The notes beneath the pieces are model-generated. The model did no database searches and was not told where the DNA came from. It saw nothing but the letters and a program-made list of their open reading frames with translations. A program made the translations under genes and the position numbers. A DNA stretch of 64,000 nucleotides from positions 1-64,000 of IMG/VR virus record IMGVR_UViG_3300027747_002221. One strand, 5' to 3'. Positions 1 through 33,784 of this stretch are shown here, piece by piece; the stretch's first letter is position 1; the number at the start of each line of letters is the position of its first letter.

Positions 1-579
1 TATGATTAGAATTTCAAACCATTTTATTATAAAATTTTCATAATCTTTAAAAGAAACATTTTTTTGATTTGCCTGGTTTGAACTATAAGGTTTTATTTCA
101 ACAGATTCTAATCTAGATAATAGATTAAAATTTAATATCATTTCATCTACGTCTTTTTTTATTAACTTATCCCCGGCCAACATTAGAACACAAAAAGGTT
201 TTTTAAGTAAAGCCATATTTTTCCATACTAATTCTGAATCTTGTCTACAATCAAAATCATAACTAACAGATGTATAGCATTCTTCATCCGTTGTTATATC
301 ATTTATCATTGATAAATTTGTAATAATATTAAATTTTACATTGGGGTTATATAATTTACATACTTGTTTTAAATCATAAAAGTATTTTTTAGGTAGTAAG
401 CCAACCTCACCCCCGTATAAATCTATTTGATCTATGGTTTCATATGTAGATATTTCTGATAATTTTTCATTCAATTTATCTAAATTTAATAATTTTTTAT
501 CTGATAATTGTTGATTATCTAAATAACAAAAATCACATCTAAAATTGCAATAGTACCACGGATTAATAGAAATATTCAT
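1..579 (-). CDS. Radical SAM protein (N-terminal part; runs off window edge)
   Basis: Not in ORF track. My translation from ATG at 579 (TAATG overlap with upstream stop): MNISINPWYYCNFRCDFCYL...IDLYGGEVGLLP, with CxxxCxxC and GGE motifs. Confidence 0.85.
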   Translation of the reverse strand, partial: MNISINPWYYCNFRCDFCYLDNQQLSDKKLLNLDKLNEKLSEISTYETIDQIDLYGGEVGLLPKKYFYDLKQVCKLYNPNVKFNIITNLSMINDITTDEECYTSVSYDFDCRQDSELVWKNMALLKKPFCVLMLAGDKLIKKDVDEMILNFNLLSRLESVEIKPYSSNQANQKNVSFKDYENFIIKWFEILII

Positions 580-1175
580 TAAATATCTAAATTTATAACT
601 ATTGCAAGTCGATCTTCATTACCAGTATAAGTATTAACTTCGTGCCAAATATAAGCAGGTGCTACAACCAATCTATTTTTTTTAGTTTCCACAGAAAATG
701 TTTCTGGGGGGTGAAAATGTAGATTAGAATGAAAAGCCGGATCTCTTAATATTAATTCCCCGCCGTATTGACTATTATCTATATCATTAAGATAAAAAAT
801 TCCAAATGCGGACGCACCAATATGATTATGTAAAGATTTATTTTCTCCAGTTTTCATGAAAGGTAACTTTCCTGAATTTTTAGATACCATAACTTTTAAC
901 ATATCTTTTGTCAAAATGTTTTCATCGTAAGATGATGCTAATTCATAAAAACCATCAAGAAATAAATTTTGCAACTCTCGCAAAATTGGAAACTTATTTA
1001 AATTATTTTCTGTAAATAGAGGTATCTCATCATCTATTAAAGATTTATTCGCATTATTTTGTGCCATATAATCTTTAAAAACAGTTAATGTTATTGTTTT
1101 TATTTTCTCATTCCAACTATCATCTAAAATATGATCCTTAATTACCACATTAACAGGGAATATCGTTTTTATCAC
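579..1175 (-). CDS. 2OG-Fe(II) oxygenase-like protein (TIGR02466-like)
   Basis: LHNH...GIFYL...GGELILRDP...PAYIWHEV...DRLAIVINL jelly-roll pattern; paralog of 1896..2534. Confidence 0.7.
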   Translation of the reverse strand: MIKTIFPVNVVIKDHILDDSWNEKIKTITLTVFKDYMAQNNANKSLIDDEIPLFTENNLNKFPILRELQNLFLDGFYELASSYDENILTKDMLKVMVSKNSGKLPFMKTGENKSLHNHIGASAFGIFYLNDIDNSQYGGELILRDPAFHSNLHFHPPETFSVETKKNRLVVAPAYIWHEVNTYTGNEDRLAIVINLDI

Positions 1176-1899
1176 AGGGTTCTCCTTTATAAACTTTTAT
1201 ATATTTATTATAGATTTCTTCAGCAATAAATTGTTGTCCAATCCCATTAGGATGATTATCTTTTTCTGATAATACAAATTTAGAATATTTGGATGAAAAA
1301 GTATATCCTCCAAGTTTTTTATCGGATGGCCAACCAATAATATTATTCATATTATCTATTTTATTGAAATATTTTGAGTTTAATAGTTGAGCAAAAAACT
1401 TAGTTTGATCTATATCTGTTCTAAAAATATTAACTAATGGAAAATGTATTATTGGAATTTGTTTCATCTGACAGAAATCATCAAGATAACAAATTAATCT
1501 AAGTGTTTGTTCTATACACTCCATATGCAATTCTTTTTTATCTATATGTTCCTTTAATTTTTTGGAAAAAGAATTCAATTCCTCTAAAAAATTCGGATCA
1601 TGATCTTCACAGTAAATGTTATTAATGTCATACTGGTCATACAATGATGTTTTTAATCCGTACGTCCATCCAACAACCACTAAATCTATTTTTTCAGGAT
1701 TTTCCAATATATTGGACATTAATTTGTCATACAAATAGATATTAGATGCACCTGTCTTTGAAATATTTTTAACAGGTAAATTTAATTTTTCGGATATTAA
1801 ATCTGGCCATTTTTTAAAATTAAAATCCACATCTAAATCATCATGGGGTTGCCATTTACCATCTGAATAACTAGTACCAGCAGTTAGAATATATTTCAT
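1150..1899 (-). CDS. SGNH/GDSL-like hydrolase or acyltransferase
   Basis: N-terminal AGTSYS, GASN block, C-terminal DNHPN (DxH) motif. Confidence 0.55.
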   Translation of the reverse strand: MKYILTAGTSYSDGKWQPHDDLDVDFNFKKWPDLISEKLNLPVKNISKTGASNIYLYDKLMSNILENPEKIDLVVVGWTYGLKTSLYDQYDINNIYCEDHDPNFLEELNSFSKKLKEHIDKKELHMECIEQTLRLICYLDDFCQMKQIPIIHFPLVNIFRTDIDQTKFFAQLLNSKYFNKIDNMNNIIGWPSDKKLGGYTFSSKYSKFVLSEKDNHPNGIGQQFIAEEIYNKYIKVYKGEPCDKNDIPC

Positions 1900-2534
1900 T
1901 TTCTATCTAAATCCACAACAGCACAAAATCGATCTTTTCCATAAAATTTACTAACTTCATGCCAAATATATGATGGCCCTATAATCATTCTATTTTTTTT
2001 AGTTTTAATTTTAATTTTTTGCTTAGGATGAAATCCTTTATTCGCATGAAATGCAGGATCATGTAAAATTAATTCACCGCCATATTGACTATTATCTACA
2101 TCTGACAAGTAAAATATAGCAAATGCTCTGGATGGGTGATTATGTAATCCCACTACCATATTCTTTTTTAATTCCGTAAAATTGCCGGAATCACTAAAAA
2201 ATATTTTTTTTATTTCATCTTTTGTTAGAATATTATTTTTAAAACTTGAAGCTAATTCATAAAAACAATCAATATACATATCTCGCAATTCTTTTATTAT
2301 AGGAAACATAGATGAGGTTTCCTCAGTAATAACATATGGTTTGGAAAGTTTGTGATAATCGTATGTCAATAAAAAAGTATTTTTATTATTTTTTAAATCT
2401 TTTCTCAAATCGCAATATTCACCATTTAACGATAGGGCCTTTAAAGTATTAATTAATTCGCAATTCCATTGTTCAGATTTTTCATAATCTTTTATTAGAA
2501 TATTAGTAAAAAATGGAGTTATTATATTATTCAT
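1896..2534 (-). CDS. 2OG-Fe(II) oxygenase-like protein (TIGR02466-like)
   Basis: LHNHP...FYL..DNSQYGGELILHDP...PSYIWHEV...DRF; near-identical C-terminal half to 579..1175. Confidence 0.7.
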   Translation of the reverse strand: MNNIITPFFTNILIKDYEKSEQWNCELINTLKALSLNGEYCDLRKDLKNNKNTFLLTYDYHKLSKPYVITEETSSMFPIIKELRDMYIDCFYELASSFKNNILTKDEIKKIFFSDSGNFTELKKNMVVGLHNHPSRAFAIFYLSDVDNSQYGGELILHDPAFHANKGFHPKQKIKIKTKKNRMIIGPSYIWHEVSKFYGKDRFCAVVDLDRK

Positions 2535-3627
2535 TTAATGTATAACATTTAAGATATTCTTTATTATGTCTATTTTCTAAAATAGATTGTATCAAATAGT
2601 GATTGACTGTACCCAAATCTATAGAGAAAAATGATCCTGCAGAATGCTCGAATGTGGCTTCTGTTTCAATTATTTTTTCTAAAAAATCATCCGTAAAATT
2701 TACAAAACAAGGCAAAAAATCTAGTTTATTAATATCAGATTTTACGTATGTATAAACGCTTTCCTCATTCCAACTGTTACCCGCAATATTGTTAAATTTT
2801 TTAAATAATTCTATATCATCTTTAGTTATATTACTAAAAGTAATCTCATTATTAAATGACGTATACATGAAAGGTTCCTGCCAAATTCTTTCACACGTAA
2901 AAAGTTTTGCATATTCCGAGTTATCTGTTATTATATCGTAAAAATTTTCAAAAGTATATTTCTTTGTTAAATTTAGTTTTTTAGTAAATCTTTCTGTAAG
3001 AATATGAACAAAAAATATTTCTTTTATTTCATACAAATATTTGATAAGATCTTTTTTAATTAGCGGCACTAAAGAATTTTTTAATTCTTTTTTATAACTG
3101 CCATCGTATAAATATGACGCAAGTAAATATTCCACACTAGCAAAAGAAAGAAATTCGTGAGTATTGAATTTATATTGTACAAGATTATTATATTTCTCAG
3201 AAAACTCGTTAAAACTAATATTATAGATATGATGACTTTTAGTAAAAACAGTTAGACGAAATAATAATGATTTATATATGTAATATATTTTATCTAAACT
3301 AGTTTTTTTTAAAATATTAACTAACCAAATAATTAATAGATCTAAAAATATATTTTCTTTGGCATATATAATAACTTTTGTATCCAAAGATTTTAAATAC
3401 AAAAACATTTTTTCAATAGTATCAAATGTTTTTTCTTTACCTATTATATCCTCTAAATCCATGCCCGCGGCAATTATTTTTCCATGATGATTTCCTGCAG
3501 CGGAAACTAACATATGTTCGGAAATTTTTTCAGAAATAACAATTCTATCTAAATTAACATCAATATGTGTATCATTAGAAATATATACATTATTAAATAA
3601 ATGAATTTTTTCTATCAAATGTAACAT
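2527..3627 (-). CDS. Hypothetical protein, paralog of 9113..10312
   Basis: 366-aa ORF; shares HLFxxVxxxxDxHID, RxVIS and SxExxLAxxxYD blocks with 9113..10312. Confidence 0.6.
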   Translation of the reverse strand: MLHLIEKIHLFNNVYISNDTHIDVNLDRIVISEKISEHMLVSAAGNHHGKIIAAGMDLEDIIGKEKTFDTIEKMFLYLKSLDTKVIIYAKENIFLDLLIIWLVNILKKTSLDKIYYIYKSLLFRLTVFTKSHHIYNISFNEFSEKYNNLVQYKFNTHEFLSFASVEYLLASYLYDGSYKKELKNSLVPLIKKDLIKYLYEIKEIFFVHILTERFTKKLNLTKKYTFENFYDIITDNSEYAKLFTCERIWQEPFMYTSFNNEITFSNITKDDIELFKKFNNIAGNSWNEESVYTYVKSDINKLDFLPCFVNFTDDFLEKIIETEATFEHSAGSFFSIDLGTVNHYLIQSILENRHNKEYLKCYTLNE

Positions 3628-4684
3628 CTTGTATTTTTATAACCTTTCTTATAAAATTTCCCTCATCTTCGTAAGGAGTAACCTCAATATCTAGTCCATT
3701 TGCTTCTATGATAGTTGCAGCAATTTGTTTCATAGATTTACAATGTTCCTCTACCAAACCAAACTTTTTCTGATCCTTCACAGTTTTTCGGCATCCATTA
3801 CATATTAAAAACATTGGGCAGGTATAACAGGCATTTTTCATAGTATTTAAATCGTAATCATTTGTCAAAGGAGTAAAAAAATCTCCAGACATTTCCGATT
3901 CAAAGTCTATTGGTTTTTCCTTGTCGTCTCCAAAGGATCCGCAAGAGTAATAATCTCCTTCAGGTTGCAATGCTCGTATGCTGGAATCGCAATTTCTAGA
4001 TTGAGGGCATGTAGTACCTTTGCCAGTCAATCTGCCCAACATTTGCGAAGTATTATGTTCCCAAGGATGCAGACCTGCTTTCCAAATATTTATATACTGT
4101 TTGTATATTTTAGAAAGTAGATACGGTTTTTCCTGATCTCCTGATGCCATTGCATAATTTATTTTACAAACCACATTCATTTTTTTCGCAAGTTCCACAG
4201 TCTTTAAAACAGTATCTTCATTTTCTTCCGTGATAACTGAAATAAATTGTGGTCTATACCCAATCTTATCCAACATCATATTAGAAACATCCCAAAAATC
4301 TTTTTCGGTAAATGGGGTATAGTCACCTTTTAATCGCCCATTACCATATTGAAAACTTGTAGAAACACCAACTCTAGGATTTAAAAATAAATCTGTCCAT
4401 TTTTTAGGTTGTTTATAAAATGGCCAAAGATTAGTAGTTAAAGATAGTGTGGTTGATAAATTATTTTTATCCAAATAATCTATTATATCCCAATAATATT
4501 TTGGTTTCATCATCAAAGGATCGCCACCATTAACAATAATAGTATTGGTATTCGGAAATCGTTTTAAAAATTTAAAAACATAGTCTAAATTTAAAACTGA
4601 AGTATGTTTTTCACTAATTTTAGTTGAAGAGCAGAAAGTACATTTGAAATTACATACCTCAGTTGGTTTTATAATTAAGTCCAT
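3593..4684 (-). CDS. Radical SAM/SPASM domain protein
   Basis: CNFKCTFC, NGGDP; C-terminal CPQSRNC...YYSCG...CYTCPMFLICNGC...HC auxiliary cluster motif. Confidence 0.88.
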   Translation of the reverse strand: MDLIIKPTEVCNFKCTFCSSTKISEKHTSVLNLDYVFKFLKRFPNTNTIIVNGGDPLMMKPKYYWDIIDYLDKNNLSTTLSLTTNLWPFYKQPKKWTDLFLNPRVGVSTSFQYGNGRLKGDYTPFTEKDFWDVSNMMLDKIGYRPQFISVITEENEDTVLKTVELAKKMNVVCKINYAMASGDQEKPYLLSKIYKQYINIWKAGLHPWEHNTSQMLGRLTGKGTTCPQSRNCDSSIRALQPEGDYYSCGSFGDDKEKPIDFESEMSGDFFTPLTNDYDLNTMKNACYTCPMFLICNGCRKTVKDQKKFGLVEEHCKSMKQIAATIIEANGLDIEVTPYEDEGNFIRKVIKIQDVTFDRKNSFI

Positions 4685-5187
4685 TACATTAATCCCGGAA
4701 TATACATTTCATAGCTTATTAGTCTTCTTGGGCCTGTAATATGTTTTGCTCTATGCTGAAAAATTTTATTTTGATTTAGCCACATAAAGTCTCCTCGTTT
4801 TGGATATATAACAAATTCTTCAGTTTGATTTTTAACTTGTATATTATTTCCATAGTTATCATCTAAATATAACAACAGATTAGAATTAAAATTTTTCTTT
4901 ACCATATAATCGGTGTGCCATTCTTTGGATTTAGTATCAACTCCCTGCCACATAGATTTTTCTAATAATTCTATGTTTGGAAATAATTTAGATAAGTGTC
5001 TATCAAATATTATATCATAAATTTCACTCAAATATTTTTGTGCTTTTTTATCTATGATAGGATTGTTATCTATAATGTCTTCATTCTCAGAACAATCTAA
5101 AAATACAAACTCAGAAAAATCATAATTATCTATTTCGGCAAAATGCCCTTGTATATACCCGTTAACAAAAAAATCATACGTATTCAT
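4684..5187 (-). CDS. 2OG-Fe(II) oxygenase
   Basis: WHTD (HxD)...FQHRA (H)...RRLISY (2OG-binding R). Confidence 0.72.
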   Translation of the reverse strand: MNTYDFFVNGYIQGHFAEIDNYDFSEFVFLDCSENEDIIDNNPIIDKKAQKYLSEIYDIIFDRHLSKLFPNIELLEKSMWQGVDTKSKEWHTDYMVKKNFNSNLLLYLDDNYGNNIQVKNQTEEFVIYPKRGDFMWLNQNKIFQHRAKHITGPRRLISYEMYIPGLM

Positions 5188-5726
5188 ATATTAAAATAGT
5201 AAGATGATACTATTCTTTTATTTTTAGACTTTTCTGCCCTATGTAAAAAATTATTTTTGCAATTTACCCCAATGAGCATTCCTTCTGTTGGATATATTTT
5301 AACTTCAGAATTTTTAGTTTTAAAATAAATTGCACCATCATCTTTCATATTGGAATGATATAATAAAAAGAAACAATTAGGTCCTTCGCGTAAATCATTA
5401 TGCCATACCGTTGCATCGGTGTTTACCCCTTCCCAAATGCGTCTTTTTTCTATAGTATAATCTTTAAAATATGGTTCCACAATATCTTTTGCAATCTGTA
5501 AATGTATTTGATGTAATATTATGTTATAAATTTTTATATCTTTTGGATGATAATCATTATTTTTACCTCCCTCATGTATCCAAATAATATCACTTAATAA
5601 AGGAGATATAATATCATGGTATTTTTTTCCGGTTGCTATAAAAAACCCATCGTGTGTAAATTTTTTAATTAGGTTTTTCGAATCCATATTTGTTATTACA
5701 TTCTCTGGTATATTCTGTTTCGCCAA
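5184..5726 (-). CDS. 2OG-Fe(II) oxygenase
   Basis: WEGVN...WHND...FLHRA...KRIVSSY; start may be Met at 5687. Confidence 0.72.
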   Translation of the reverse strand: MAKQNIPENVITNMDSKNLIKKFTHDGFFIATGKKYHDIISPLLSDIIWIHEGGKNNDYHPKDIKIYNIILHQIHLQIAKDIVEPYFKDYTIEKRRIWEGVNTDATVWHNDLREGPNCFFLLYHSNMKDDGAIYFKTKNSEVKIYPTEGMLIGVNCKNNFLHRAEKSKNKRIVSSYYFNI

Positions 5727-5958
5727 TAGATTCTACACCTTCAATCTCGCAAATTTTTCTATTAACTTCTCGTATTTCTTCTTTTAGTAAATTTGTATAT
5801 GGTTCCAAATTGAATATTAAATTTATATACATTTCATATTTTTCTTTATTATCTTGGCAATCGTATAAGCGAGTTATCCAAAGGTTATATAACTCTGCAC
5901 ATAAATCTCGTTCGTCACCTATTGTATTTTTTATTTTGAATAATTCTTCTGCTGTCAT
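5665..5958 (-). CDS. Hypothetical helical protein
   Basis: 97-aa ORF overlapping both neighbours in the operon. Confidence 0.5.
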   Translation of the reverse strand: MTAEELFKIKNTIGDERDLCAELYNLWITRLYDCQDNKEKYEMYINLIFNLEPYTNLLKEEIREVNRKICEIEGVESIGETEYTRECNNKYGFEKPN

Positions 5959-6458
5959 AATATATTAAAATCAAAAGATGCCACTCGGCGTTGTATACTA
6001 GATGGTGTTGCTTTATGCCAGAACTTTTTACCGTTATTTACTAGGAATAAATCTCCAGCAATTGGCTGAAAAGATTCTTCGCAATCCCCATATTTAAATT
6101 GGACTGCTCCGCCAGTTTCTAAATAAGTATTATCAAAATAATATAGAAAAAATAAATCGTACCCCTCAAACATATCAGTATGCCAACCTTGATTATCCTT
6201 ATCTACACCGTCCCACACGATAAATTTATTATATCTCGAATTATGCCAATTAGCATCTATATATTTTTCTTTTAAGTAATATGCAAATGTGTTTAATCTA
6301 TTAGTTAATTCCAAAGGAATATCTTTGATACCATTATCTCTAGATCTTTCTTCCACATTCAATAATTTAAAATCATTAATTTTTATTAATGATAGCGCAT
6401 CGGGTTCCAAAAATTTAAAAAATCCCTTTTCTTCTATATCTTTTACTATACTAGACAT
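5955..6458 (-). CDS. 2OG-Fe(II) oxygenase
   Basis: WDGVD...WHTD...GGAVQF...FWHKA...RRVASFDF. Confidence 0.72.
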   Translation of the reverse strand: MSSIVKDIEEKGFFKFLEPDALSLIKINDFKLLNVEERSRDNGIKDIPLELTNRLNTFAYYLKEKYIDANWHNSRYNKFIVWDGVDKDNQGWHTDMFEGYDLFFLYYFDNTYLETGGAVQFKYGDCEESFQPIAGDLFLVNNGKKFWHKATPSSIQRRVASFDFNIL

Positions 6459-8125
6459 GATGCCATTACCTCACTTTTAATAATCTCCAAATTATTTATT
6501 AATAATTCTTCAATAGTTTGTATTCTAAATTTGCCTAGTAACATTCTTATTGATCTAGGTTTAGAATTTTGGTCAAAAATATCATCAATTTCTTCTTGTA
6601 TAGGAATAAAATCATCTAGTTGCTTTATTATATTAAAACTAAGTTTGGCAAAATCTCCGGGTGTTATATATGTTTCAAATAAATGATAGCAATTTTTTAT
6701 TAAAAAATTACCTGCATTATTCATAAACCACATCTCTTTTATATCATCTTCAGTAAAAGAATAACAAGATTTTATCGTTTCAAAATAATTTACTTTATTT
6801 TTATACAATGTATTCCAACTATCAGACCCAGCTTCGTCTACTATATCGGAATAAACTTTTACAGTTTTAATGTTATACTTTTCTTTATAAACTTTATCGT
6901 TTAATCTAGAATCCGGAAGAAACATATAGTCATGTCTATAACTTCCCCATGCCTTAAAATTCCATATTATTTCCATTTCGTCGTAAAAATCTTGTATTGT
7001 TGAGCCTGGCATGCCCAATATTAATTCTAATGCAGGAACAGGAAAATTAAATTCTTCGCATCTATTTTTAATATGTTCACTTAATTTAATTTTATCTTTA
7101 AAAGAAAGATCAATCCTTTCTGCAACTTTCATTGCCTCATCTGATATACTTTGTATTGAAACTGTAGGCACTATAGAATTTCTAATTAGATCATTCCATT
7201 TATCATCTTTTTGGTTTTTTATTCTAATATCCGATCCAACTATATTAAACCAAGAATCAATTAATTTTTTTCTTCTATTTAAATCTTTGGATTTAACAGT
7301 CGAAATATCAGTCAGACTAAATTTATTATTCCATGCAAATTCAAATATTTCTAAATCTCTTTCTTCAAAAGCACCAAAATTTGCATCAGTTAAATATGCT
7401 CCAGTATACCCACATTTGATCATAGCTAAAATATCTCGTTTAACTATATCCAATGGCTTTTTGTAAATTTTTGTTCCTATTCCTCCACCCCATTCGCAGA
7501 ATACACATTTATAGGGACACCCCCGTGTTGTTTCCAAAACAATAAAAGGTTCCATTTGTTTTGTATAAGCATAATTTAAAATTTCAGTTAAATACTTTTC
7601 ATGTTCTTCATATACTGAATAGTTAATATCGAGTAAATATGTTTTATTTTTTTCAGATTGCAATTCCCACGATACATCTTTTTTATTAGGTTTGCCATTT
7701 GAGGTAAACCAGGAATCAATTAAATCTTCTACGAATACTTCTCCAGGTTTAGTGGGTTGGCATATAAAATCATAATCAATCCTTGATTCTAAAAATTTAT
7801 TGTCATTGGTACCAATATGCGGGCCACCTAATACTGTAATTTTATTTGAATTTTTATTTTTAATTGTTTTTGCTATATTATCTAATATATCGTAATTCCA
7901 GACATATGAAGAAAATAAAATTATATCTGCTGTTTGTATTTCTTCAATTACCTCATCTATAGTCTGATACATATCCCATTTATAAGGAGCTGGCAACCAT
8001 TCTACATTTTTAGAATATTTACCGTAACGTGTATAGTGACTTTGACATAGTAAATATGTCAAATTATTTACTAAAGACCAGTCAGCGTGAGGGGGATTAA
8101 TGAATGCTATTTTTAATTTCAACAT
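6446..8125 (-). CDS. Cobalamin-binding (B12-dependent) radical SAM protein
   Basis: N-terminal Rossmann-like FSSYVWN...VLGGPHI; ETTRGCPYKCVFC; LTDANFG. Likely start MLKLKIAFINPP at 8125 (ORF track extends to 8161). Confidence 0.82.
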   Translation of the reverse strand: MLKLKIAFINPPHADWSLVNNLTYLLCQSHYTRYGKYSKNVEWLPAPYKWDMYQTIDEVIEEIQTADIILFSSYVWNYDILDNIAKTIKNKNSNKITVLGGPHIGTNDNKFLESRIDYDFICQPTKPGEVFVEDLIDSWFTSNGKPNKKDVSWELQSEKNKTYLLDINYSVYEEHEKYLTEILNYAYTKQMEPFIVLETTRGCPYKCVFCEWGGGIGTKIYKKPLDIVKRDILAMIKCGYTGAYLTDANFGAFEERDLEIFEFAWNNKFSLTDISTVKSKDLNRRKKLIDSWFNIVGSDIRIKNQKDDKWNDLIRNSIVPTVSIQSISDEAMKVAERIDLSFKDKIKLSEHIKNRCEEFNFPVPALELILGMPGSTIQDFYDEMEIIWNFKAWGSYRHDYMFLPDSRLNDKVYKEKYNIKTVKVYSDIVDEAGSDSWNTLYKNKVNYFETIKSCYSFTEDDIKEMWFMNNAGNFLIKNCYHLFETYITPGDFAKLSFNIIKQLDDFIPIQEEIDDIFDQNSKPRSIRMLLGKFRIQTIEELLINNLEIIKSEVMASCLV

Positions 8126-9116
8126 ACTTAAAAGTCTCTTTAAAGACGCACTCACCCACATCTCTTACAATTTTTTTATAGTCATTTTTTATAAAACAAG
8201 TAAAAGGGCATTTTTTAAAATATTCACATTCGAAACAATTGTATTGATCAAAGAATTTTTGTATTATGATGGTAGAACCTAAATTTTTAGTGCTACTATC
8301 TCTTAATAAAACAGATCCTGAGCATCCGGCAGGATTAGTACCATCATACATAACTGTATAACTATTGCCTCTTGTACAGGACATTCTATTTTCTCTAGAA
8401 TTTTCTGTAAAATATGATATATTCAAACATAAAGGGTAATTATCAACCAAGTGTTTATAAAATTTTAATAGGTCTGATTCTTTTGGCATTAAGGTTTCAG
8501 AAATACTTATTGATGGTAGAAAAGAATCCCAATCGCATCTGAAATTATTATACAAATAATCAAAATATGAATCGCCCTTTATAACAGCTTCAATATTTTG
8601 TTTTGTCATTACCAAGGATATCATTTCAATTTTATCTTTAAAAATTTCTATATTATTTTTAAAGATATCAAACTGAGTATTAGTAAATCTACCATGGGGA
8701 TCGTATGATACTGATATTTTTAAATTATTTTTTTCAAGGAAATCTGAAACTTTTTTAGTTTCAAAAAAAACTAAATTTGTAACAAAATTAAAAACTAGTG
8801 TTTTTTCGGTATCCACCTTACTTTTTATTTTATCTATGAATCTTTGATATATACTTAAAAATTCTTCTTGAATCCAAATATCTTGAAATATTTCTCCACC
8901 CATTATATGTAATTTAAAATATGTAGATCTTTTATTATTATTGATCCATTCTACGATTCCTGGGACTTTGGAAAGTATTTCTTTTTCAGATGCACCTTGT
9001 GTATTGGTATGATCTTGAGGACAAAATACACACTTAAGATTGCAATGATCAAAAAGACAAATAACTAATTCTGCATAATCTATAATTTTTTTATCAATTA
9101 ATTCATAGGGTATCAT
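8097..9116 (-). CDS. Radical SAM protein with Cys-rich (SPASM-like) C-terminus
   Basis: CNLKCVFC, MGGE; C-terminal CTRG...GCSG...CFECEYFKKCPFTC...C. Confidence 0.82.
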   Translation of the reverse strand: MIPYELIDKKIIDYAELVICLFDHCNLKCVFCPQDHTNTQGASEKEILSKVPGIVEWINNNKRSTYFKLHIMGGEIFQDIWIQEEFLSIYQRFIDKIKSKVDTEKTLVFNFVTNLVFFETKKVSDFLEKNNLKISVSYDPHGRFTNTQFDIFKNNIEIFKDKIEMISLVMTKQNIEAVIKGDSYFDYLYNNFRCDWDSFLPSISISETLMPKESDLLKFYKHLVDNYPLCLNISYFTENSRENRMSCTRGNSYTVMYDGTNPAGCSGSVLLRDSSTKNLGSTIIIQKFFDQYNCFECEYFKKCPFTCFIKNDYKKIVRDVGECVFKETFKYVEIKNSIH

Positions 9117-10312
9117 TTTAGTGTAAATTTAAATAATTTTTCTCTCATTTTTTGCTGAGCTAAAGATTTAATATATGGTAAAAGTACAAAAAGTATTTGT
9201 TCTCTTAAATCAAGCGGAATATGAATCATTGCAATTTTTTCTTTAAGATTATCGTCTAAAACGTTATTATAATCTTCTTCCGACAAAATTTCTTTTCTTG
9301 CAGAATCCATATATTTAAAATTATAACTTGGATCACCATCATGGCCCGCATTTGTCAAATCTTTTATTATTAATGCTTTAGTGTCCTCAGACATCCACAC
9401 CGGCCAATTTCTAGAATCAGTCATCATTTTTGCAAAAGGAACGTTTGAAAAATCCACATCAGATGTCCCAGATGATCCTCCGGGATTACTATAACCCATA
9501 ATAGAAATAGCAAATTCATCGGTAACATTACATAAATCTTTTACATCTTTATCACTTATCAAAGATAAATCAAGCTTTGAATTCTTTCCAGGTTGATAAC
9601 TTTTAAAGTATGGCGCGCCGTCAAGATTTTTAAAATATGGGGCTTTATAAACTGACATTTTATCTAATTCTAAATAATTTTTAATTGTTTTAGAATGACC
9701 TCCCAATATTTTTTGTGCATCGTCATCCAATATATAGGTATCTATATGTTTTCTTACCTCTAAGATGTATAGTTCATATGTTCGTTTAATAAACCGTGCA
9801 AATAATTTTTTTAATTTTTCTTTTTTACTAAAGTTTCTATCATAGAATGCTGTTGCCAACATAAATTCTATAGAAGGCGAAAAATCTAAATCAGAAAAAT
9901 CAGACACCTCTGCAGTATCCCATAAGGATTTTATACGAGAAATTAAAGAATCGCACGGATTGCTATATACCTGCATTTTATGCCCATAGCAATCCGCAAA
10001 AGTTTCAAAAGAATCTTTATCCATATTCGTAGTGGATTTTAACCAAGATACTATTATCTTAGAAAAATTTTCTTCATCTGCAAATATAACAATTTTTTCT
10101 CCCTTTATAGCATAAAGGTTGCGTATAAAATCTGAAAAAGAAATGTCGCCCAACGCCTCATTCCAAGTTTTACCCGTGTTTAATGTTTTTGGATACACTG
10201 AAGCATCTTTAAGATCGTCCGTAGCATATTCTTTCGATATAACTACGCGATAATTAAAAGTGTCGATATGCTTATCTTGTTGTAAGAATACATCGTCAAA
10301 TAGGTGCAACAT
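9113..10312 (-). CDS. Hypothetical protein, paralog of 2527..3627
   Basis: 399-aa ORF; shared motifs as noted for 2527..3627. Confidence 0.6.
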   Translation of the reverse strand: MLHLFDDVFLQQDKHIDTFNYRVVISKEYATDDLKDASVYPKTLNTGKTWNEALGDISFSDFIRNLYAIKGEKIVIFADEENFSKIIVSWLKSTTNMDKDSFETFADCYGHKMQVYSNPCDSLISRIKSLWDTAEVSDFSDLDFSPSIEFMLATAFYDRNFSKKEKLKKLFARFIKRTYELYILEVRKHIDTYILDDDAQKILGGHSKTIKNYLELDKMSVYKAPYFKNLDGAPYFKSYQPGKNSKLDLSLISDKDVKDLCNVTDEFAISIMGYSNPGGSSGTSDVDFSNVPFAKMMTDSRNWPVWMSEDTKALIIKDLTNAGHDGDPSYNFKYMDSARKEILSEEDYNNVLDDNLKEKIAMIHIPLDLREQILFVLLPYIKSLAQQKMREKLFKFTLK

Positions 10313-28017: not shown

Positions 28018-28094
<77 letters not shown>

Positions 28095-30950: not shown

Positions 30951-31024
30951 TGGATGCGGGAGATGGATTCGCACCACCCTCGAGAGAGCTTATGAGACTC
31001 TTCGGGTCACTAGACCTTCCCGCG
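30951..31024 (-). tRNA. Atypical tRNA-Met(CAT), initiator-like (C1:A72)
   Basis: CGCGGGA/TCCCGCA acceptor, 4-bp D-stem with 4-nt loop, CTCATAA loop, T-loop TGCGAAT, CCA. Confidence 0.7.
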
Positions 31025-31218: not shown

Positions 31219-31310
31219 TGGCGGAAGACGGAGGAGTCGAACCCCATCCCTGTTAAGAGAACCTGGTTTTCAAGGCCAGTCGCAGGACCAACCCCGCTGC
31301 ATCATCTTCC
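31219..31310 (-). tRNA. tRNA-Ser(TGA)
   Basis: CTGGC-CTTGAAA-ACCAG, long variable arm, GCCA. Confidence 0.88.
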
Positions 31311-31664: not shown

Positions 31665-31756
31665 TGGTACCAGCGGTGAGACTCGAACTCACTCAAGAAC
31701 GCTAATCTGGCGCTAAAAGGTGTATAAGACCTCTCTGACTACCCAGTCTCGCTGGC
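31665..31756 (-). tRNA. Atypical tRNA with TAT anticodon and long variable arm
   Basis: GCCAGCG/CGCTGGT acceptor, GACT-GGGT-AGTC mini D-arm, GAGGT-CTTATAC-ACCTT, variable hairpin AGCGC/GCGTT, GTGAG-TTCGAGT-CTCAC, ACCA. Confidence 0.75.
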
Positions 31757-33110: not shown

Positions 33111-33187
33111 TGGTGCCCCAGGCGAGACTCGAACTCGCAAAATTTGGCTTCTAAGACCAACACGTATACCAATTCCGTCACCGAGGC
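33111..33187 (-). tRNA. tRNA-Leu(TAG) with short variable loop
   Basis: TTGGT-CTTAGAA-GCCAA, 5-nt variable region, ACCA. Confidence 0.85.
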
Positions 33188-33193
33188 AAATAC

Positions 33194-33269
33194 TGGCGGT
33201 CTTAGGGGGTAACGATCCCCACTCTTACGGCGTGACAAGCCGTCGTGCGTCCATGAACACTTTAAGACC
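33194..33269 (-). tRNA. tRNA-Asp(GTC)
   Basis: ACGGC-TTGTCAC-GCCGT, GCCA. Confidence 0.9.
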
Positions 33270-33270
33270 A

Positions 33271-33470
33271 TATTAGGATAAGCTACTGGTTTTCCGGGCC
33301 AGCCCTTAATTGAGCAGTTACTCTGTCCATCCCATTTATTCTGTCGTCTGTGTGCAGTTGGGATTCTGCCTATCAGAGCCTGAGTATTTCTCTCGCTAAC
33401 GGTTTTCTGCCACCGGATCTCTATCGCTAATCAAGCGCTATTTTAACGAAAATAGTAACGGGATCTTTTT
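33271..33470 (-). ncRNA. Candidate ~200-nt multi-hairpin ncRNA
   Basis: No ORF; at least 5 hairpins; directly downstream of a sigma70 promoter. Confidence 0.5.
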
Positions 33471-33480
33471 ACTTGTTTCT

Positions 33481-33508
33481 ATTATAACATCATTACAATA
33501 ATTGTCAA
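33481..33508 (-). promoter_or_regulatory. Sigma70 early promoter
   Basis: TTGACA-16-TATAAT. Confidence 0.7.
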
Positions 33509-33710: not shown

Positions 33711-33784
33711 TGGTCCTCTCGGATGGTAACGATCCAACGTCTATCGATTATCAATCGATTGCTCTACCTTTGAGCTACAAGAGG
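33711..33784 (-). tRNA. tRNA-Ile(GAT)
   Basis: ATCGA-TTGATAA-TCGAT, CCA. Confidence 0.9.

Follow-up and report, generated by a model that had tools for sequence, protein, structure and literature searches.

A phage-borne family of five-arm tRNAs with an invariant UAU anticodon and a predicted role in reading the isoleucine codon AUA

The window analysed here, 64,000 nt in length, comprises the first 64 kb of the 222-kb virus record IMGVR_UViG_3300027747_002221, which has a GC content of 35.6%, whose DNA was found in freshwater lake metagenome runs, and whose family B DNA polymerase is 48-49% identical to those of T4-like cyanophages. By using ARAGORN, 25 tRNA genes were identified on the minus strand in the middle of the window, among which is a 92-nt gene called as tRNA-Ile with the anticodon TAT. 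Direct reading of the sequence showed a tRNA with an extra arm, namely a 7-bp acceptor stem with G1:U72, an encoded CCA preceded by A73, one connector nucleotide, a 4-bp D stem closed by a 4-nt loop, a canonical 7-nt anticodon loop, a hairpin of 5 bp with a 7-nt loop in the variable region and a normal T arm. The RNA reads GCCAGCG-A-GACU-GGGU-AGUC-A-GAGAGGU-CUUAUAC-ACCUUUU-AGCGC-CAGAUUA-GCGUU-CUUGA-GUGAG-UUCGAGU-CUCAC-CGCUGGU-A-CCA. The features of this gene and of its surroundings are collected in Table 1.

Table 1. Positions of the five-arm tRNA(UAU) gene, its structural parts and other elements observed in the window, with the evidence that is specific to each.
Position	Strand	Feature	Sequence	Evidence
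31665-31756	minus	Whole 92-nt gene, including encoded CCA (31665-31667) and A73 (31668)		ARAGORN call; family covariance model R1, 107.3 bits; Rfam tRNA-Sec model, 28.6 bits (cut-off 47); general tRNA model lower still
31750-31756	minus	Acceptor stem, 5' strand, pairing with 31669-31675; G1:U72	GCCAGCG / CGCUGGU	All 7 pairs show compensatory changes; pair 1:72 is G.U in 59 of 64, A-U in 3 and C-G in 2
31737-31749	minus	A8 (31749, the single connector) and D arm, with the G18/G19 equivalents in the loop	A; GACU-GGGU-AGUC	D stem invariant in 64 of 64, A8 in 63 of 64
31715-31735	minus	Anticodon arm, a stem of 5 pairs plus 3 invariant outer pairs (G.U, A-U, G.U); loop at 31722-31728; anticodon UAU at 31724-31726	GAGAGGU-CUUAUAC-ACCUUUU	Four stem pairs show compensatory changes
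31698-31714	minus	Extra (variable) arm; 7-nt loop at 31703-31709	AGCGC-CAGAUUA-GCGUU	Three of 5 stem pairs covary
31693-31697	minus	Five unpaired nucleotides between extra arm and T stem	CUUGA	GA invariant by column counts on alignment A1
31676-31692	minus	T arm, 5-bp stem and canonical T loop	GUGAG-UUCGAGU-CUCAC	Four of 5 pairs covary, including the outermost pair 66:82
28.0-33.8 kb	minus	Array of 25 tRNA genes		ARAGORN
28018-28094		CAU tRNA of the Ile2 (lysidine) type		Best E. coli matches are genes annotated tRNA-Ile, at a median of two places per genome
30951-31024	minus	74-nt tRNA-like gene with a CAU anticodon		Model R1, 30.4 bits; missed by ARAGORN and Rfam
31219-31310	minus	tRNA-Ser(UGA)-like gene with a long extra arm and G73-CCA		Sub-threshold Rfam tRNA-Sec hit, 36.6 bits; missed by ARAGORN
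33111-33187	minus	77-nt tRNA-Leu(UAG) with a Leu-type D arm and A73, without a long variable arm		
33194-33269	minus	tRNA-Asp with an altered T loop	AUCGUUA	
33711-33784	minus	tRNA-Ile(GAU) with an altered T loop	AUCGUUA	
33270-33464	minus	Conserved non-coding element of about 190 nt between tRNA-Asp and tRNA-Cys		No Rfam match
about 33478-33508		Promoter-like element, 16/17-nt spacing	TTGACA / TATAAT	
1-10000		Stretch of 26-28% GC, against 33-43% in the rest of the window		

The anatomy given in a preliminary description of this locus was thus confirmed in every feature, with two refinements: the anticodon stem can extend to 7 bp through the three outer pairs, and five unpaired nucleotides separate the extra arm from the T stem. 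The side claim of that description, that the CAU tRNA at 28018 is the lysidine type, was supported as well by its E. coli matches. The minimum-free-energy fold gave the same five helices, although the fold energy alone is unremarkable (z = -2.16). At this locus the general Rfam tRNA model (RF00005) did not win and scored below its cut-off of 29, while the best hit of the clan was tRNA-Sec (RF01852), itself far below its cut-off.

To determine whether the gene is a single occurrence, homologues were searched by blastn against cultured phages, and were found in Sinorhizobium phage Phosso, where the gene is annotated tRNA-Ile(tat), and in Synechococcus phages S-SRM01 and S-SKS1, where it is unannotated. 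A motif scan of IMG/VR returned at least 120 contigs, and a second scan anchored only on the D arm added 28 more real members. At least 131 copies were found in IMG/VR phage contigs and the three cultured phages, with ARAGORN recognising the gene in 131 of the loci retrieved. In contrast, the same motif scan over one genome from each of 185,579 prokaryotic species gave only three hits, all on MAG contigs made of dense, phage-like tRNA arrays. Therefore, the family is in effect specific to phages, and it occurs in phages of cyanobacteria and of an alphaproteobacterium. Two sub-types were distinguished: type A resembles the window copy, with CCA encoded and the gene in large tRNA arrays, while type B resembles the cyanophage copies, with CCA usually not encoded and the gene in small tRNA sets. 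The 3' end follows the local custom, in that the neighbouring type B tRNAs that were read also lack CCA.

Alignment of 64 distinct sequences (A1) provided the decisive support for the fold. For the five-helix structure 99.5% of cells were paired and 18 of 28 pairs had changes on both sides, whereas none of 500 shuffles did as well and only about 43% of cells were paired when the partners were slid. One register, with a 7-bp acceptor stem and a 5-bp T stem, each fully paired in all 119 complete copies, and with A73, fits every member. An 8/4 or 8/5 register, as in allo-tRNA or tRNA-Sec, had appeared possible in S-SRM01, where ARAGORN shifts the start by one base, but was rejected, because the outermost T-stem pair 66:82 covaries (GC 54, CG 5, UA 4, AU 1) and A8 cannot pair with C82. 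The three outer anticodon-stem pairs do not vary, so covariation can neither support nor refute them. The GG of the D loop and the UUCRA of the T loop are conserved, and the only 2 of 64 members with A at the third D-loop position are the only 2 with U at the third T-loop position, that is, the G19:C56-type elbow pair covaries, so the RNA very probably forms a normal tRNA L shape. The covariance model built from the family (R1) scored every other tRNA in the window at 31 bits or less, with tRNA-Leu(UAA) the second-best at 30.9 bits, and found exactly one copy each in the three complete genomes searched, namely this genome, Phosso and S-SRM01. A decaying pseudogene or a false positive of the tRNA finder could be suspected from the sub-threshold Rfam scores, the modest fold z-score and the absence of the gene from the tRNAscan-SE 2.0 list of 11 tRNAs published for S-SRM01, but this reading is refuted by the intact copies, none of which has a broken acceptor or T stem, and by the compensatory substitutions. 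The word 'aberrant' in the preliminary description is accordingly misleading, as this is a strongly conserved gene family and not a degenerate copy.

While the acceptor, T, anticodon and extra-arm stems vary freely, A8, the whole D stem, the AGAG that follows it and the UUU(U) opposite, the anticodon loop YU-UAU-A, the extra-arm loop CAGAUUA, the GA before the T stem and A73 (64 of 64) are invariant or nearly so. In the sample anchored only on the D arm, which did not require them, UAU was present in 118 of 118 members and CAGAUUA in 117 of 118. Three further IMG/VR-wide scans, asking for any other base at each anticodon position, returned 37 hits, all unrelated DNA. No conserved complement of the extra-arm loop was found elsewhere in the tRNA when checked by eye.

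The five-arm tRNA(UAU) always lies among ordinary tRNA genes and behaves as a core member of phage tRNA sets. Its most frequent partners are a CAU tRNA (109 of 131 loci) and tRNA-Leu(UAA) (76 of 131), and the commonest minimal set, found at 16 loci, consists of these three. Large arrays are near-complete tRNA sets that hold roughly one reader per codon box, and by a crude sequence classification about two thirds of the 33 arrays with 20 or more tRNAs have initiator-type and elongator-type Met CAU tRNAs but no Ile2-like CAU, leaving the five-arm tRNA as the only candidate AUA reader. However, the phage studied here carries an Ile2-type CAU tRNA as well, and seven related loci carry an ordinary 73-75-nt class I tRNA(UAU) next to the five-arm one, so the latter is sometimes redundant as a simple AUA supplier, which hints at a function beyond supply. 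The array of the window holds other unusual tRNAs. The CAU tRNA-like gene at 30951 shares the compact core, with a single connector A and a 4-bp D stem with a 4-nt loop, and has an initiator-style C1xA72 mismatch, a long bulged anticodon stem, a 2-nt variable region and the T loop UGCGAAU; similar genes occur in related arrays. The tRNA-Leu(UAG) is of class I size, and the T loop of tRNA-Asp and tRNA-Ile(GAU), which replaces UUCGAAU and recurs in CAU tRNAs of related arrays, looks like a swap of the T54:A58 tertiary pair to A54:U58. Outside the window, ARAGORN predicted a permuted tmRNA-like gene with the tag peptide ANDEQFALAA at 138861-139233 (minus strand) of the same genome.

Evidence for transcription is weak, since lake metatranscriptome contigs, some carrying the common C38-to-A variant of the family, cover the gene only at low depth, tRNA contigs cross-map and DNA carry-over is possible, so that neither expression nor processing is shown. 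The non-coding element between tRNA-Asp and tRNA-Cys behaved differently, as its contig word depth reached 500-27,000 in four lake metatranscriptomes, far above its neighbours; nine other phage tRNA-array loci have copies at 79-88% identity and six more share a shorter core. It is a candidate stable phage sRNA inside the tRNA array, although with 8 copies a structure has no covariation support yet.

The demand for AUA reading is high in this phage, which uses AUA at 28 per 1000 codons, or 38% of its Ile codons. By aligning its DNA polymerase with 120 homologues, AUA columns were found to be Ile-type (I 0.73, L 0.08, V 0.14; n=17), as ATT columns are (I 0.67, L 0.04) and unlike Leu-codon columns (L 0.70-0.84). 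Of the bacterial Ile identity set (PMC9976931), A73, A35, U36 and A37 are invariant in the family, while A38 is found in 45 of 64 members and is C in the window copy. The other Ile determinants are absent from their usual places: position 34 is U and not G or lysidine, pair 29:41 is mostly G:C instead of C29:G41, pair 4:69 is mostly A:U instead of C4:G69, and U12:A23, G16/U20/U21 and a class I body are lacking. Domain searches of the phage genome found neither a TilS-type PP-loop domain (PF01171) nor a class Ia synthetase domain (PF00133).

Of the three functions proposed in the preliminary description, charging by LeuRS or SerRS with mistranslation, TilS-independent AUA decoding and a decoy for anticodon nucleases, the second fits best, and the interpretation given in that description is partly supported. 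A recoding tRNA, by which AUA would be partly read as Leu or Ser through LeuRS, SerRS or another synthetase ignoring the anticodon, is suggested by the long extra arm with A73, as bacterial Leu identity is A73 plus tertiary elements and does not use the anticodon. Moreover, the acceptor stem in the window differs by one base pair from that of the phage's own tRNA-Leu(UAA), and precedents exist in nematode nev-tRNA-Ile(UAU), which is charged with Leu (PMC3333845), and in allo-tRNAs, which insert Ser at Leu codons. However, the 4-nt D loop has no equivalents of positions 14 and 15 and lacks the A14, A15:U48 and D-loop spacing elements of Leu identity, and A73 and the common C2:G71 are antideterminants for SerRS. 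Across phages the acceptor stem does not track the co-resident tRNA-Leu(UAA), against the idea that it does so through shared identity or gene conversion, and G1:U72 with A73 is also frequent in the Leu(UAA), Leu(CAA), Lys(UUU) and Val(UAC) tRNAs of these arrays. Systematic misincorporation at a codon used this heavily in Ile-type columns would be costly for a gene so conserved, and a synthetase blind to the anticodon would not explain why no other anticodon was found. We therefore regard recoding as unlikely, with SerRS disfavoured and LeuRS not excluded.

A non-translational role, as a decoy or sponge for a host anticodon nuclease or another tRNA-binding defence protein, or as a ligand for a phage or host protein recognising the extra-arm loop, is likewise doubtful but not excluded. 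Invariance of a 7-nt loop together with junction nucleotides is what a specific protein-binding site would look like, and it is not explained by simple decoding; co-occurrence with other AUA readers in some phages, and the neighbouring tRNAs with altered cores and T loops, which fit pressure from tRNA-targeting defences, point the same way. However, a nuclease decoy has no positive evidence, hosts that rely on TilS have no native tRNA(UAU) for a decoy to imitate, every member keeps an aminoacylatable acceptor end (7 bp, A73, and CCA wherever the neighbours encode it), the anticodon loop keeps U33 and A37, and the gene fills the AUA gap in tRNA sets that otherwise have one reader per codon box.

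Among described tRNAs the closest are the allo-tRNA(UAU) species (Mukai et al. 2017, NAR; PMC5389517), which are tRNA-Sec-like false positives overlooked by standard annotation, with a long extra arm, a tetraloop D arm, a longer anticodon stem and a UAU anticodon, and were drawn as five-stem junctions. These have an 8/4 or 9/3 acceptor/T arrangement, a long D stem and mostly G73 or U73 (Ser identity), the UAU group carries stem-destabilising mutations, and they come from Acidobacteria, Clostridia and Proteobacteria, often next to toxin-antitoxin genes. The phage tRNA shares the extra arm and the tetraloop, but is 7/5, always has A73, a 4-bp D stem and intact stems, and sits in phage tRNA arrays and not next to acidobacterial toxin-antitoxin loci, so it fails the defining tests for allo-tRNA, although an overlap with the sequences of that study cannot be fully excluded. 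Nematode nev-tRNA-Ile(UAU) (Hamashima et al. 2012; PMC3333845) also combines a class II body with UAU, but is a eukaryotic, lineage-specific derivative of tRNA-Leu without a reported invariant V-arm loop or compact D arm, and has no sequence relationship. The tRNA-Ile(UAU) of TilS-less or redundant systems in Mycoplasma mobile and lactobacilli (PMC3575796) shares the anticodon, A37, A73 and, in our reading, the decoding of AUA without lysidine, but is an ordinary class I tRNA depending on a co-evolved IleRS (Arg or Lys in place of Trp905) and, in M. mobile, a co-evolved ribosome, whereas the phage tRNA would have to work with unadapted hosts from several phyla. tRNA-Sec shares the 4-nt D loop, long extra arm, loss of the 8:14 and 15:48 tertiary layers and, if the three outer pairs form, the elongated anticodon stem, but has an 8/5 arrangement, a 6-bp D stem, a UCA anticodon and G73. 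Bacterial class II tRNAs (Leu, Ser, Tyr) share the extra hairpin, and Leu and Tyr share A73, but those of this same array have large D loops and short extra-arm loops, and in the five-arm tRNA the extra arm is followed by five unpaired nucleotides and there is only one connector nucleotide. Searches of the open literature found no description of the phage family.

Taken together, we favour, with moderate confidence, a phage tRNA of a previously unannotated structural class that reads AUA with an unmodified or lightly modified UAU anticodon and is most likely charged with isoleucine by the host IleRS, through A73 and the A35-U36-A37-A38 side of the anticodon loop, which would give an AT-rich phage AUA-decoding capacity that does not wait for host TilS to make lysidine. 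The gene family, its fold, the conservation of its anticodon and extra-arm loop, its restriction to phages, its place in tRNA arrays and the Ile-like use of AUA rest directly on the sequence analyses, while aminoacylation with Ile, decoding on the ribosome, independence from TilS and any role of the extra-arm loop are inferences. Also inferred is a structural rationale, in which the 7-bp anticodon stem, A22 and the 4-bp D stem give about 12 stacked layers (7+1+4), as the 6+6 of tRNA-Sec do, and would compensate for the 8:14 and 15:48 layers that a 4-nt D loop cannot form, preserving the distance from anticodon to elbow. Occurrence in phages of such different hosts means that the family must rely on universally conserved host machinery. 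Against this reading, E. coli IleRS is 360-fold worse on a UAU anticodon than on LAU, and an unmodified UAU tRNA cannot tell AUA from AUG on E. coli ribosomes (PMC3575796), so hosts that have TilS should charge and use it poorly unless the unusual body compensates. In addition, six allo-tRNA(UAU) species converted to amber suppressors were inactive in E. coli translation, and Mukai et al. suggested that most allo-tRNA(UAU) species are not used in translation (PMC5389517).

A more speculative and, in our view, unlikely possibility is that the extra arm is a built-in copy of the tRNA-Ile(GAU) anticodon arm. The loop CAGAUUA has GAU at its three central positions and A at the 38-like position, and its stem keeps C:G at the 29:41-like position in 63 of 64 members, which are the anticodon-branch Ile determinants that the UAU arm lacks; the 5-bp stem, 7-nt loop and 5-nt spacer also match the dimensions of a class I tRNA. 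Host IleRS could then be recruited, or the RNA proof-read as 'Ile', through this second arm while the UAU arm does the decoding, making a two-headed tRNA that separates synthetase recognition from codon reading and so gets round the universal discrimination of IleRS against U34. This idea is post hoc and geometrically uncertain, as a 5-bp arm stacked on a tetraloop D arm would be about three layers short.

In practice, because Rfam's cut-offs miss the family and the published annotation of S-SRM01 omits it, phage tRNA inventories and codon-supply analyses probably undercount AUA readers. The reading of AUA is a classic weak point of the bacterial code, which normally needs TilS and lysidine, with IleRS rejecting U34, and a widespread family of phage tRNAs with a fixed UAU anticodon and a body unlike any bacterial isoacceptor suggests that phages evolved one portable solution that works across host phyla. 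If charged with something other than Ile, it would be natural proteome recoding by a virus; if charged with Ile, it shows a new way to build Ile identity or AUA/AUG discrimination into the tRNA body, which would be directly useful for genetic-code engineering, for example in freeing the AUA codon.
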